A stretch of 64,000 nucleotides of DNA from Rebecca billardiae RCC1528 (taxonomy: Eukaryota > Protista > Haptophyta), in NCBI GenBank assembly GCA_965240325.2, contig OZ251236.1, positions 186,001 to 250,000 on the forward strand. Direction: 5' to 3'. A model generated the notes under the pieces. The model ran no database searches, had not been told where the DNA came from, and saw only the letters and a program-made list of their open reading frames with translations. The position numbers were made by a program, and so were the translations under genes. Below are positions 41,578 to 50,030 of the stretch, piece by piece (the stretch's first letter is position 1; each line of letters starts with the position of its first letter).

Positions 41578-43785
41578 ATGCCGAAGCAGTGCGGCCCGAT
41601 GATCCGCGGCGTGGGCTACAGCCCGAGCCTGCCGGGCGACCCGGGCGCCACCGACCTGTACGCCTGGTCTCGCCGGCGCGTGCACGAGCGCGACCTGCCG
41701 CTCATCAAGGCGATGGGCGCGACGTCGATCCGGCTGTGGAGCTGGGACCTCTCGCGCTCGTACACCGCGTTCCTCGACGCGTGCCAGCGGCACGGGCTCG
41801 ACGTGCTCGTCTCCTTCCCGCTCCGCTCGCAGTGGTACCCCGACATCTCCTCGCCGTCCGCCGTGCGCGCGATCGTGCGCGACTTCAAGCTGCTCATCAC
41901 CACGCACAACCACCCGGCGGTGCGGATGTGGCTGATCGGGAACGAGCCCAACCTGGACGAGGCGTACGCGCAGCACGCGACCAAGTTCTACGAGCTCGTC
42001 GACAAGCTCATCGGCGTGCTCCGCGAGGAGGAGGCCGCGTCCGCGGCGCGGCGCGTGCCGACGTGCGTGCCGCTGGCAACTGTGGAGCTGGACGCGTGGG
42101 TGGGCGCGTACGAGCAGATGCGCCGGCCGGAGGGCGCGGCGGAGGCGGACGCGTGGTGCCTGCAGGTGTACAACGGCGACACGCTGGGCAAGGGCTTCTT
42201 CGACTGGTACGCCGCCGCCACCGACCGCGGCCTCGTCATCTCCGAGTTTGGGCACGATTCGTACAACCTCGTGCGAGCGGCGGACGACGCGGGCGCGCGC
42301 GCGATGCAGGCGCGCGCGCTCTCGAGCATCTGGGGCGAGATCGAGGAGGCGCGCGGGCGGAAGCACGGGCCGTGCATCCTCGGCGGCTCCGTCTTCGAGT
42401 TCTCCGACGAGTGGTGGAAGGGCGACGGCGAGCTCGACGAGGGCGGCGTGCTCGGCTGCCCGGACGACGACCCTTTCCGCCACCGTCCGTGTGGATGGCC
42501 GTCCGAAAAATTTGTCGACGGCCACATGTCGGAGGAGTACCTCGGGATGATGGCGCTGTACGAGTCGCGCGGCGCGTACTGCCTCGAGCCGCGCCCCGCG
42601 TACGCCGCGCTCGCCCGCGCGTGGGGCACCGAGCTCGACGCCGCCTCGCTCACGCGCGCGCAGCTATGCATGGGCTCGGCCGACGTAACGGCCGTAACTT
42701 TCTGGGCTGGGCTGGTGGCTCTGCTGCTGCTGCCGCTGCTGCCGGCGTGGGTGCGCGCGGCGGCGCGGAAGCGCGCGGCGGACGCGCCGTCGCGCCGCAC
42801 GTCGCGCGCCGAGAGCACCCCGCCCACGCCGCCGCCGAACACCGCCGCCGCCGCCGCCTCCAAGTTCGCCACCGCCGGCGCCAAGCACCACGCGGCCGCG
42901 GCCGGCGGCGCCGAGCCTGCGAGCGCGCCGCCGCGCCGCCGCTCGTTGCTGTTGGACGCAGCCGAGCGCGCGCCGGCCGAGCTGCGCGCGGTGCGCGCGC
43001 AGATCGAGGACGTGCGCAGCACGGTGGACGGCTCGAACGGCGTCGAGGCGCGCCAGCTCGGCGCGTACCTCCAGCTCGACGCGCGCTCCCTCGACACTCG
43101 GCGCGTGTTCGCGATCGGCGGCGGCGCCGACGGCGGCGGCGCGGACGCGGGCGCGGACTCGGCGGTGGCGACCGCGCCGCGCGCGACGCGCCCCGCGGCG
43201 TTGTCGAACAAGTCCCCGGCGCAGGTGGCGGCGGACCGCGAGGCGCTGAACGCGCAGCTGCGCCGCGTGCTCGTCACCGCCTCCGCGCACAACTTCGACG
43301 CCCTCCTCGCGCACCTCGACGTCGCCCTCGATTCGTACACCCTCCCTGTGCTCAGGGGCGAACTCGTCGACGCGCCGCCGAGTCGGCTTATTGATGACTG
43401 GCCTGTGCTCGAGCGCGCGCGGCGCGCGGCGGGGCGCGGGGCGCGGGGCGAGGAGGGCGCGGCGCAGGGCGCGGCGTCGTCGCTGGTGCTGGACCACGAG
43501 CGGCTGCTCCTCGCCACGCTCTACCTCGCCGTCCGCTCCATGTCCGACCTGACGATGCACACGCCGAGCCGGCTGCGAAGCATTTTCGAGTTGCACTGCG
43601 CGGTGGAGGGCGCGGAGGCGGGCGGCGGCGCGGGCGGCGGCGAGGGCGGCGCGGCGGGCAGGCCGGCGCTGCTCCACCTGCACCTCGACGCGGCGCTCGC
43701 GCAGTTCGCCGCCGACCTCGAGCTGCTCGTCGGCGTGCAGCCCGAGGCCGAGGCTCTCGCCGAGCGGAGCGGCGCCAAGGCTTCT

Positions 43786-43823
<38 letters not shown>

Positions 43824-46800: not shown

Positions 46801-49094
46801 CGGCTGCACTACGGGCACCCGGACGTGTTCGACGCGAACTGGCTCCGCCGCACCGCGATCAACGCCAAGGCCTCCCCGGTCCTCCACGTCAACGAGGACG
46901 TGTTCGCAGGGTACCAGGCTTTGCTGTCGTCGGACGCGTCAGCACACACCGACCACATCCAGTTCGAGAAGGGGCGCGAGGTGAACTTCGGCGGGGCGAA
47001 CGGCTTCGAGTCGAAGCTCGCGGCGGGCGCGGTGGCGCAGTGCCGCACGCGCGACCTGTACGAGCTCAACCTCCGCCTCGACATCGTCCGCCAGACCTTC
47101 CTCTTCCACTCGTCGCTCGGGTTTTACGTGACGCAGGCGCTGTGCGCGCTCGCCGTCTATCTGTACGTGCTCGTGCACGTGCTGTTCAAGCTGGCGCACA
47201 TCGACCTGTCGGAGATGCGCTGGCACACGGAGTTCCTCGCGAGCGAGTGGTTCCTCTCGATGGGCTTCCTCCTCATCGTCCCGCTCCTCGCCGAGCTCGC
47301 GCTCGAGAACGGACCTGGCCACGCGCTCGTCGAGCTGCTCTCGTCGCTCCCGCTCTCGACGTGCTTCTTCACGTTCCACCTGCAGACGCGGCTGTACTGC
47401 ATGAGCGTGGCGATCATGACGGGCAAGTCGGCGTACGTCGCCACCGGCCGCGCGGGCCCCGAGCACCGCCGCTCCATCCGCGACAACTACGTCGACTACT
47501 TGCGCTCGCACTACCAGCCCGCGTGCGCGCTGTTAGCGCTGCTGCTCACGTACCGGCTGCTCGCGCTGGACAACGGCGAGATGCGCACGCTGCCGATGCT
47601 CTTCATCTGGTTCTCCGCCTTCAGCTGGCTGCTCGCGCCGCTGCTCTTCACGCCGTTCCCCTCCGAGGGCGTCCTCCTCTCCGAGCTCGGCGAGCTGCGC
47701 ACCTTCATCCTCAAGTGGTACACGCCGCTGCGCGCGCTCACCGGACAGAAAGTCCGGGACGTGGGCGCGGCCGCCTCGGTGGTGAAGGACCTCACGGCGC
47801 GCCACCGGAACAACTGCCTCGACCAGTGGATGGCGCACAGCATGGTCGACGACGCGCGGCACCTGCTCAAGCGCGGCGTGCTCAACCGCGTCGCCTTCCT
47901 CCTGATGCGCCTCGCGCTCCTCGCGCTCTGCGCGGGCGCCGTCGGCTGGGTTCTGCCCTCCGCCGTCCTAGGCCTCTGCTCGCATCTCTCGCTCGCGTGG
48001 CTCAGCCTCGTGCTCATCCTCGGCGTGAAGCGGCCGGCGCTGCTCAGCTCGCTCCGCTGCTGCGTCAACGTAGGCAGCGGCTGGGACCGCGTCTCCGACT
48101 TCGTCCTCGTCTGCACCCCGCTCGCCGCGCTCGGATGGTTCGCTTCCACCGAGCCGCTCCTCACGCCGTCCGCGCTGTTGCTCGGCGTCTGCGCGACGCT
48201 CTTCGCCGCCTGGCAGCTCGAGCAGGTGCGCCGCCGCTCCGCGCGCGGCTCGGCGCGCCCGGCCTGGCGCGCGCCCTCACCGCCGCGCACACGCCCGCCT
48301 CCGCCCACGCCGCGCCCGCAGCTCGCCACCCTCCTCGTCGTCCACCGCGCCGACTGGGCCGATGGCGACGAGCAACGCCGGCTCGCGAGGATGGTCGACG
48401 GTGTGCACCGCGTGCGGCTGGTCTTCCCGTCGCGGCTGCTCGTCAAGGCGCTCGGCATCTTGATCCTGCTGCTGCAGGTGCGCCGCGCCCCACGGCGCCC
48501 GCGCGCGCCGCGCGCGCGCCACGCTCGACGGCTGCGCGCGCATGCGCGCGCGCGTGCATGCATGCGCGCACGCATGCGCACGCCGCTGAGTTCGCGTCCC
48601 CAACACCGCGCCGTGCGCAGGCGATCGCCGGCTTCGCGCTGTGCTTCGCCGGCAGCTGGCACACGTACGCGCTGTTCGGGCTGACGCTCGCCGAGCCGCA
48701 GCGCAAGGGCTTCCGCCAGGGCGACACGCTGCGCCGCATCTGGCAGCAGACGCTCGATACCTCGGGGGCGCAGGGCGGCGCCAGCATCGTGCTGCTGAGC
48801 GCGGGCAAGGCGCGCGCGCGCTTCCGCCGCGCGTTCCTCGCGACCGCGCTGAGCAAGCAGCTCACCGCGCCCGACGCGAAGGGGCGGCAGGGCGGCCGGA
48901 CCCGTCCGGCCGAGGGCGGCCTGGGCGATCTCTCCACCAGCTCCATCGGCCGAGGGCCGAGGCTCCCCCGGTCGATCTCGCCGATGGGCCGGCGCTCGCG
49001 GCGAAACAGCGACAGCGCCGCCGGCCGCGGCGCGCGCGTCGTCCGCTTCGGCTCGTTCGGCAAGGGGCAGCAGCAGCCGCCGGCGGCGCCGTAG
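41578..49094 (+). CDS. Fusion of a clan GH-A glycoside hydrolase TIM barrel and a GT48 1,3-beta-glucan (callose/FKS-type) synthase
   Basis: Single uninterrupted frame 41578-48225, then introns 48226-48321 and 48478-48620. GH motifs: RGVGYSP, ERDLPLIKAMGATSIRLW, WLIGNEPN, ISEFG, FEFSDEWWK. GT48 motifs: LWASYQQQTVARTVRG, IDANMD, GCREAIFS, RLHYGHPDVFD, KAS..HVNEDVFAG, KGREV, YVATGR; many TM helices. Confidence 0.9.
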
Positions 49095-50030
49095 GCGAAG
49101 GTCGCAGGCGGCGCAGCAACTCGCTCGTCTACGCTGCATTGTCATTGAGCTGAGCCGCGCACGCAACGGTTACTCAGCGACGTTCGGGTGACAGTTTTAG
49201 TCGGTTGACGACGAGCAATGAGGAGCCATCACGCGCTGACGATGACGATGATATATCTCGGATGAGTATGTGTATCGTCCGCCGGTGGCGGAATATTGAT
49301 ATTATTATTGTATTTGGCACCGCATTTTATATTATTTATTATTATTATATAATATATATATTGTCGTCGCGATCTGCGCTGCACCGCTGCGCGCCCATCA
49401 GCCTCAGGCTCATTCACTCACACTGACTGAATGAGTCCCTTGAACCAGTGAACTCGCATGAAACCTCGGCAGGCGCAGGCGGTTCGCGGTGGTCGAGCGA
49501 GACCTAAGGCGGCTAAGCCGAGCAGGAGCTAACTAAGAGAGAGTAGGGGAAACAAACCGCGCGTCTCGATATCTGCTCCCGTTCGGAATAAGTTATTATG
49601 GCCGAAAAAGTGACTCGTCTGGTGCCTGGTCATTTTTGGGCCCTATGTTCCCCAGTGGTTTCACTGTGAAATGGCGGAGGTCATACTGAGCCATCTCACG
49701 AACCACGGACCGTAGCAAGCTCGGGATGGTTTTGCCGCGAGTTCCTAGGCGAGCTTAGAAGAAGCACGATCGAACAAACTGTTGGAGCTTGCCGTATCCA
49801 CTTGCGCTCGGTCGCGGCGGGCCGCGAAGAAGGTGCTCTCTAGCTTGGCTCTGGGACAGCCAAGTGTGCCAAATGCAAATCCACCGGAGGAGATACCACC
49901 CGACCGTATTCATCATTGCCAGCGCAATTATAATTTATTTTTTGTATTTAAGTATAGCATTATTCGATATATATATGTATATATAAATTATACCGACGCG
50001 TGATCCGTCCTAGTATGCAACGGGCAAGCG

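Follow-up and report, generated by a model that had tools for sequence, protein, structure and literature searches.

A predicted two-exon gene of the haptophyte Rebecca billardiae joins a clan GH-A glycoside hydrolase barrel to a divergent beta-1,3-glucan synthase

We analyzed a 64,000-nucleotide stretch of the genome of the haptophyte Rebecca billardiae RCC1528 (assembly GCA_965240325.2, contig OZ251236.1, positions 186,001 to 250,000 of the forward strand). This whole stretch is referred to below as the window, and coordinates are counted from its first letter. Between positions 41578 and 49094 a glycoside hydrolase (GH) barrel is joined to a GT48 beta-1,3-glucan synthase. We consider it likely that the locus is a two-exon gene for a 2,457-residue bifunctional membrane enzyme, a member of an old protist family, that combines glucan synthesis with remodelling on the exit side of the membrane. 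From the N terminus, the layout of the family is an optional signal peptide, the GH barrel, a membrane helix, a cytosolic linker, a membrane block, the GT48 domain, and another membrane block. The corresponding parts of the window protein are the following.

41578..42663, + strand: clan GH-A (beta/alpha)8 barrel, residues 1-362, GH157/GH72/GH158-like (AlphaFold2 model, fold match, and profile)
41938..41949, + strand: GNEP, putative acid/base Glu123 at the end of strand 4 (alignment; model strand 115-120)
42241..42252, + strand: SEFG, putative nucleophile Glu223 at the end of strand 7 (alignment; model strand 218-224)
42670..42768, + strand: single membrane helix, residues 365-397 (Kyte-Doolittle peak 2.27)
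42769..44169, + strand: low-complexity Ala/Gly/Arg-rich linker, residues 398-864, in which the coding signal of guanine-plus-cytosine content at third codon positions (GC3) is retained
44170..44850, + strand: first membrane block, before the GT domain, residues 865-1091 (hydropathy peaks)
45355..47097, + strand: cytosolic GT48 catalytic domain, residues 1260-1840 (Pfam PF02364; Fks1/Gsc2 match)
46483-46503, + strand: GKACNMR, a GT48 motif
46891-46911, + strand: NEDVFAG, the GT48 ED motif
47113..48477, + strand: second membrane block (glucan channel region), residues 1846-2300 (hydropathy; the Fks1 alignment reaches residue 1492)

The same fusion in other protists

A restriction of this architecture to the alga is not supported. 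When every fetched protein was scanned for both halves, at least 12 GT48 relatives were found to be fused, with the same order of GH domain, membrane helix, and GT48 domain. A word-index search with region 1625-2045 was used; region 1240-2100 was swamped by Gly/Ala repeats. The fused proteins were from the following sources.

Diplonemids: Flectonema P0164, Rhynchopus P0087, Hemistasia P0088, and Sulcionema P0189
Kinetoplastid: Apiculatamorpha P0105
Dinoflagellates: Symbiodinium species (P0013 and its cluster), annotated "callose synthase 7"
Metagenome eukaryotes: P0091, P0188, P0193/P0290, P0196, P0192, and P0194

Several of these relatives are open reading frames (ORFs) of assembled transcripts, and in those organisms both domains are therefore on one mRNA.

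Some individual proteins had further peculiarities. Sulcionema specki P0189 (2,770 residues) is a triple fusion of, in this order, GH81 domains (PF03639/PF17652), a degenerate barrel at residues 815-1105 that has lost both catalytic Glu, and a GT48 domain. P0192 starts with just the last 60 barrel residues, and small ORFs are present upstream of it (L002:1881-3000); these may hold the remainder of its barrel, if a prokaryote-style gene call has broken up the domain at introns or frameshifts. P0186 (ENA, 2,723 residues), the top GT48 match, was rejected as the closest relative: it has two GT48 cores in one predicted protein, owing either to tandem duplication or to the merging of gene calls, with the canonical GKPENQN motif and no barrel. 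A feature search of the ESM Atlas returned only weak GT2 matches (0.77), which were not used. For three start variants of the window protein, no identical sequence was found in the protein collection.

The barrel is a clan GH-A domain related to beta-1,3-glucan-active enzymes

When residues 1-375 were compared with 1.84 billion representative proteins, 1,305 relatives were found at E <= 0.001 and 60 at E <= 1e-30. Nearly all of them cover the full 340-residue domain, with 30-38% identity. The family is mostly bacterial, and many members lie inside large multidomain proteins; the few relatives with a source name were labelled RHS, PKD, or M6 protease-like. In an alignment of 34 family members the Glu positions in GNE and (T/S)E(F/Y)G are conserved; a further motif of the family consists of DEWWKG and, behind it, CP...H..CG and EEW.G. 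The counterparts of GNEP are GNEL in bacterial and Euglenozoan members, INEP in LaGH157, and GNEV in Gel4. The counterpart of SEFG in LaGH157 is TEFG, the Glu of which is replaced in the E224A laminaritriose complex (PDB 9g4n).

A profile built from this alignment matched LaGH157 (PDB 9fz9) best among PDB structures (8e-21), ahead of the GH72 enzyme Gel4 (7e-18), GH158 (6e-16), and then GH2 enzymes and Gas2 (5e-13). The AlphaFold2 model made from the same alignment (predicted local distance difference test score, 89; predicted template-modelling score, 0.90) is a (beta/alpha)8 barrel in which strands 115-120 and 218-224 finish just before Glu123 and Glu223, the arrangement that defines clan GH-A. 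Foldseek ranked GH157 first for this model. Structural alignment with VIA-align gave a Z score of 28.4 for LaGH157 (root mean square deviation, 2.9; 289 residues aligned) and 25.7 for Gas2 and GH2 barrels, and Z scores to GH157, GH72, GH2, and GH1 barrels were 25-28 throughout.

None of these families can simply be assigned to the barrel. The GH157 match reached 8e-21 by family profile, but the window sequence alone gave an E value of 0.01, at 18-20% identity. The GH158 match of the window sequence alone (phmmer, 1.2e-5) extended over residues 40-149 only, and that of the profile (6e-16) over positions 43-222. The window protein had no match to the GH72 domain PF03198 at E <= 0.01, whereas 28 of the 34 relatives did; Gas2 matched the window sequence alone with an E value of 0.13, and the window protein has no glycosylphosphatidylinositol (GPI) or Cys-box region after the barrel. 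The GH2 domain PF02836 scored 16.7 bits in the whole protein (cut-off 21) and 21 bits, equal to the cut-off, with the domain alone. The N-terminal domains of GH2 enzymes (sugar-binding and Ig-like) are absent from the window protein, in which the barrel begins at residue 9.

Alignment and model together place the barrel in clan GH-A, with a putative retaining catalytic pair that is intact. Its three nearest characterised families (GH157, GH72, and GH158) all act on beta-1,3-glucan; GH157, for example, is an endo-beta-1,3-glucanase that acts on linear beta-1,3-glucan (PMC10229575). The initial annotation had described a GH-A barrel of about 350 residues with both putative catalytic Glu and with bacterial relatives of the GH2, GH158, and GH72 type. 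Both descriptions agree with the motifs, profile, and fold searches reported here, with GH157 as the nearest solved family.

The catalytic pair is not kept throughout the fused proteins. In the Symbiodinium-type barrels of P0013 and P0188, which stand behind a signal peptide and have an insert of about 100 residues, both Glu are replaced (GLNL/AQFG). The sequence suggests that the domain has become a pseudo-enzyme in this lineage.

The GT48 half is a divergent synthase with the known active-site residues

The window protein matched the Pfam Glucan_synthase domain PF02364 with 289 bits (E 1.1e-85; cut-off 37.2) and, among PDB structures, yeast Gsc2/Fks1 with an E value of 1.6e-39. According to a review of cryo-EM work on Fks1, UDP-glucose is bound there by Y849, E851, K1082, and N1085, a D1102-A-N1104 motif is present, and the catalytic residues are E1221-D1222 (PMC12715860). 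All of these residues are matched in the HMMER alignment of the window protein to Gsc2/Fks1, in PAYGE, GKACN, DAN, and NED. The ED motif reported previously is thus in place, with NEDVFAG at the position of E1221-D1222. A change of the GKPENQN motif to GKACNMR had also been reported; the altered motif is present, but its Ala is a signature (GKA.N) of the whole fused GT48 clade rather than private to this alga, and only the Gln-to-Met changes are unusual.

Hydropathy places membrane blocks on both sides of the GT domain (residues 865-1091 and 1846-2314), as GT48 requires, and residues 998-1095 are weakly homologous to the fused relatives P0196, P0193, and P0290. A Gly/Ala-rich insert (45730-46317) splits the GT48 domain. 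The Pfam scan of the window protein gave no match to FKS1_dom1 (PF14288), the N-terminal accessory domain of fungal and plant enzymes. The same combination, PF02364 without PF14288, occurs in the Symbiodinium-type members P0013/P0014 and in such other fused members as had a precomputed Pfam list displayed; the absence of PF14288 is a subfamily difference and no bar to GT48 membership. Judged by its sequence, the GT48 half is a divergent beta-1,3-glucan synthase that is probably active.

Membrane topology and proposed mechanism

The membrane helix at residues 365-397 is directly followed by a strongly basic segment, RAAARKRAADAPSRRTSR, a positive-inside signal that puts its C-terminal side in the cytosol. 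All fused relatives have a single helix behind the barrel, and most have a clear signal peptide before it. In Fks1, six helices separate the N terminus from the GT domain, and both of these lie in the cytosol (PMC12715860). With one helix added to a topology of this type, the barrel would come to lie on the face away from the cytosol, at which the glucan leaves the membrane, and the signal peptides of the relatives likewise indicate the extrusion side.

This arrangement suggests a mechanism in which the GT48 domain would polymerise UDP-glucose to beta-1,3-glucan at the cytosolic face and its channel would thread the growing chain across the membrane. The extra helix would tether the barrel beside the exit, on the lumenal or outer face, and there the barrel, as a retaining beta-1,3-glucanase or as a transglycosylase, might cut the emerging chain or transfer it in the manner of GH72 enzymes. 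Such cutting or transfer could set chain release, length, or packing. In particular, we infer that the barrel would work in cis, on beta-1,3-glucan that is just leaving the channel. A functional precedent for the coupling of synthesis and remodelling comes from a recent study of fission yeast, in which a GH16 protein, Ghs2, was found bound to the synthase Bgs3 and was modelled close to the pore of extrusion; branched glucan was shown to depend on it (PMC13612389).

Several observations weigh against the proposed enzyme. The main weakness of the model for the window copy is the missing signal peptide. As had been noted previously, none was found at M1, and no exon that could encode one was found in the three forward frames of 41060-41640, a region that includes the AT-richer 490-bp spacer at 41089-41577. 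Export of the 360-residue N-terminal domain is therefore unexplained for this copy. The earlier proposal that the GH domain sits on the extrusion side is supported by the signal peptides of the relatives, and the trimming, release, or transglycosylation of the nascent chain proposed with it is hypothetical. In addition, the number of helices before the GT domain is ambiguous from hydropathy alone. Two Gln beside active-site residues (the equivalents of Q1086 and Q1105) are Met in the window protein (GKACNMR and DANMD); the Met of DANMD also occurs in the dinoflagellate sublineage, and that of GKACNMR is private to the window. Finally, both catalytic Glu are gone in two sublineages (Symbiodinium/P0188 and Sulcionema), which indicates that catalysis is dispensable in some members.

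The same loss bears on the possibility that the barrel is mainly a non-catalytic module at the channel exit, one that binds beta-1,3-glucan or guides the chain, and that the Glu pair is incidental. As the domain has been kept in the two sublineages despite the loss of the Glu pair (GLNL/AQFG), binding or guiding has to be among its functions and may even be the principal one. However, the window, all other Euglenozoan members, P0193, and P0196 have GNE and (T/S)E(F/Y)G just as the bacterial enzymes do, and such exact retention argues for selection on catalysis. We regard a mainly non-catalytic barrel as unlikely, while giving it some weight.

It is less probable still that the barrel of the window protein is cytosolic and acts there on cytosolic beta-glucan or oligosaccharide primers or on granules without a membrane. 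The lack of a signal peptide and of an exon encoding one would be expected in that case, and the window barrel, which begins at residue 9, is also missing the N-terminal hairpin of its relatives. In contrast, the strong positive charge behind the helix predicts an N-out orientation, the relatives are clearly secretory, and the conserved Cys motif CP..H..CG suits an oxidising compartment. 

Gene structure

The barrel and the GT48 domain are encoded by one real gene. The GC content of the window is 62-79%, and at such GC long open frames alone are weak evidence; many overlapping ORFs of 500-700 codons are present near the locus in other frames and on the other strand. The ORF in question extends over 41521..48684 on the + strand, with its first in-frame ATG at 41578 and its stop at 48684. 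In 150-nucleotide steps along this ORF, GC3 is 0.84-1.00 in one frame from 41578 to about 48480, whereas GC at codon positions 1 and 2 is 0.56-0.94 and 0.28-0.92. The signal continues from the GH part into the GT48 part in the same frame and without a break. This unbroken periodicity demonstrates that the two parts are in a genuine coding frame rather than in a chance open frame.

Past about 48480 the GC3 signal switches to the frame of ORF 46464..49094. Of those GT..AG joins that yield one frame ending at 49094, the pair 48478-48620 alone preserves the membrane helix ...ILILLLQ|AIAGFALCF.... The frame switch and the intact helix at the join indicate that the gene most likely has two exons, and the predicted product of the spliced gene would have 2,457 amino acids. 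The junction between the GH and GT48 parts lies inside exon 1. The initial annotation had described one continuous frame, intron-free to 49094, that joins the GH and GT48 parts through one membrane helix. The continuous frame is confirmed by the GC3 signal from 41578 to about 48480, the single joining helix appears in the hydropathy profile, and every motif named in that annotation was found at its given position; the frame itself ends at 48684, and 49094 is reached only with the predicted intron. The gene is made up as follows.

41089..41577, + strand: spacer, likely promoter/5' untranslated region, between the stop of the upstream gene (41086-41088) and the start codon; GC drops to 0.38-0.6
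41578..48477, + strand: exon 1, 2,300 codons, with the GH barrel, membrane helix, linker, first membrane block, GT48 domain, and most of the second block
48478..48620, + strand: predicted GT-AG intron of 143 nucleotides, rich in GC/CATG simple repeats (GC3 frame change and helix-preserving join)
48621..49094, + strand: exon 2, with the last membrane helix, the basic C-terminal tail, and the stop (49092-49094), followed by AT-rich sequence; GC3 is 0.90-0.98

It is very unlikely that two adjacent genes have been merged into one gene model because stops are rare in DNA of 72% GC. The abundance of overlapping 500-700-residue ORFs in other frames and on the other strand would allow for such an artefact, as would the linker of about 470 residues, for which homology to relatives was not found (residues 398-864). 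However, the GC3 periodicity stays in a single frame throughout, and transcriptome relatives encode both domains in a single ORF.

In-frame repeats, a run of 13 Gly within the linker (43789-43827) and six AAGGGG units in the insert that splits the GT48 domain (45745-45852), are both in regions without homologues. An AT-rich simple-repeat tract (TATTATT/ATATAT) at 49280-49360, about 200 nucleotides past the stop and in surroundings of 70% GC, may be a terminator or polyadenylation region.

Origin of the fusion

In a tree of GT48 cores (IQ-TREE; 48 rows, 430 columns), all 11 fused proteins and the window formed one 14-row clade with support of 98/97. Three short or possibly truncated sequences also fell inside this clade. 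The synthases of plants, green algae, fungi, and oomycetes lie outside it, as do those fused to a KRE6-type GH16 domain. The window protein has its GT48 core inside the clade, a homologous N-terminal barrel, and the single helix behind the barrel. An arcellinid amoeba GT48 protein, P0187 (1,520 residues), is also within the clade; no barrel was detected in it.

In a tree of the barrels without the Glu-less members, the window, Euglenozoan, and P0193 fused domains formed a 7-row group, inside a set with support of 96 in the Shimodaira-Hasegawa-like approximate likelihood ratio test; the only fused row outside the group was P0196. In the full 152-row tree this grouping reappeared, unsupported, and the Glu-less barrels of Sulcionema, Symbiodinium, and P0188 were apart from it on long branches. 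A single origin of all fused GH domains was marginally rejected by approximately unbiased (AU) tests on quick trees (p-AU 0.036 and 0.010), with P0196 and the degenerate members at issue.

Because the window barrel groups with Euglenozoan-type barrels, the fusion was, in our reading, already present in a common ancestor of at least the window protein and the Euglenozoan-type lineage. On these comparisons the fusion is an old enzyme family rather than a one-off. If the barrel came from bacteria, it would have done so long ago and not through capture by this alga. The suggestion in the initial annotation that the GH domain may have been acquired horizontally is not supported for this alga: the domain groups with fused Euglenozoan domains instead of bacterial ones. 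A recent, independent capture from bacteria by this alga is extremely improbable: the window barrel scores higher against bacterial sequences (33-38% identity, E values to 1e-51) than against fused Euglenozoan ones (1e-25 to 1e-28), and the AU results point the same way, but the trees place the window with the Euglenozoan and P0193 fused domains, the outsider is P0196 and not the window, the GT48 partner of the window shares a clade with theirs, and codon usage is equal in the GH part and the remaining gene.

A possible connection with paramylon

It is possible, although we hold it only tentatively and think it rather doubtful, that the clade of GH157-like/GT48 proteins is the machinery for crystalline, unbranched beta-1,3-glucan granules of the paramylon type. 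If so, the task of the tethered barrel would be to free or shorten chains and thereby allow their crystallisation. R. billardiae is, as in the initial annotation, presumed to belong to the Pavlovales, a group reported to store paramylon-like granules, and possession of the clade would then explain why the reserve glucan of Pavlovales differs from that of other haptophytes. Dinoflagellates store starch, and the clade includes dinoflagellates as well as the arcellinid amoeba GT48 protein P0187, which argues against this reading. Euglenozoa, however, store paramylon (PMC10161547), and paramylon-like granules are attributed to Pavlova (Kiss and Triemer 1988, cited in PMC10543733). The Euglenozoan relatives compared were diplonemids and a kinetoplastid. 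The clade provides a concrete candidate for paramylon-type granule synthesis, which is of biotechnological interest.

Comparison with known systems

No description of a GH-A/GH157-like barrel fused to a GT48 synthase was found in the full-text literature, with subscription papers outside this coverage, and within the same coverage nothing was found on the domain make-up of EgGSL2, the paramylon synthase of Euglena. The Symbiodinium members are annotated simply as callose synthases. Thus, the family of GH-A-barrel/GT48 proteins is apparently undescribed.

The nearest architectural parallel is the fusion of GH16 (KRE6/SKN1) domains to GT48, which likewise joins an extracytosolic beta-glucan-remodelling GH domain to a synthase in one polypeptide. 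In those proteins, however, the hydrolase is a beta-jelly-roll GH16 domain, whereas that of the window protein is a (beta/alpha)8 GH-A barrel, and the GT48 parts of the two types fall into separate clades of the tree. GH16/KRE6 proteins are tied to beta-1,6 branching, but the relatives of the window barrel are not. The GH16-GT48 fusion has been described for oomycetes and is called restricted to them (PMC13612389). A KRE6/SKN1 domain (PF03935, GH16) together with GT48 was seen in P0182, P0214, P0216, P0219, P0221, P0222, P0224, and P0271. The hosts of these KRE6-type proteins are many protist and metagenome eukaryotes, with an MMETSP transcript and a picozoan among them, which is at odds with that restriction. 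The oomycete matches listed carry a sugar-transporter domain (PF00083) with GT48 instead.

Ghs2 and Bgs3 of fission yeast are similar in that a remodelling, hydrolase-type domain is coupled to a GT48 synthase at the glucan exit (PMC13612389). They differ in being two separate proteins of the fungal cell wall, with a GH16 partner, whereas the window encodes a single chain.

The barrel itself can be compared with the GH157 enzymes (LaGH157, PDB 9fz9/9g4n; BcellWH2_01931, PMC10229575), whose catalytic Glu pair and D.WWKG region align with those of the window. Those enzymes, at about 18-20% identity to the window barrel, are soluble, bacterial, and degradative and have an extra C-terminal domain. 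The GH72 beta-1,3-glucanosyltransferases (Gas2 and Gel4) are likewise clan GH-A barrels that act on beta-1,3-glucan outside the membrane, but the window protein is without a PF03198 match, a GPI signal, or a Cys-rich C-terminal module. Fungal Fks1/Gsc2 and plant callose synthases share with the window protein the Y, E, K, N, DAN, and ED residues and the membrane channel region. The window protein differs from them in having GKA.N in place of GKS/PxNQ, the extra N-terminal GH domain and helix, and large low-complexity inserts.

To our knowledge, the control of length, release, and packing of GT48-made beta-1,3-glucans is largely unknown. The lineages with live and with dead catalytic Glu provide natural controls. 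In the proteins described here, a hydrolase fold unrelated to that of GH16 is permanently tethered to GT48 synthases of a separate clade, and this second kind of fusion is shared by Euglenozoa, dinoflagellates, and this alga. With two GH folds thus joined to GT48, a synthase combined with an exit-side remodeller looks like a recurrent solution.

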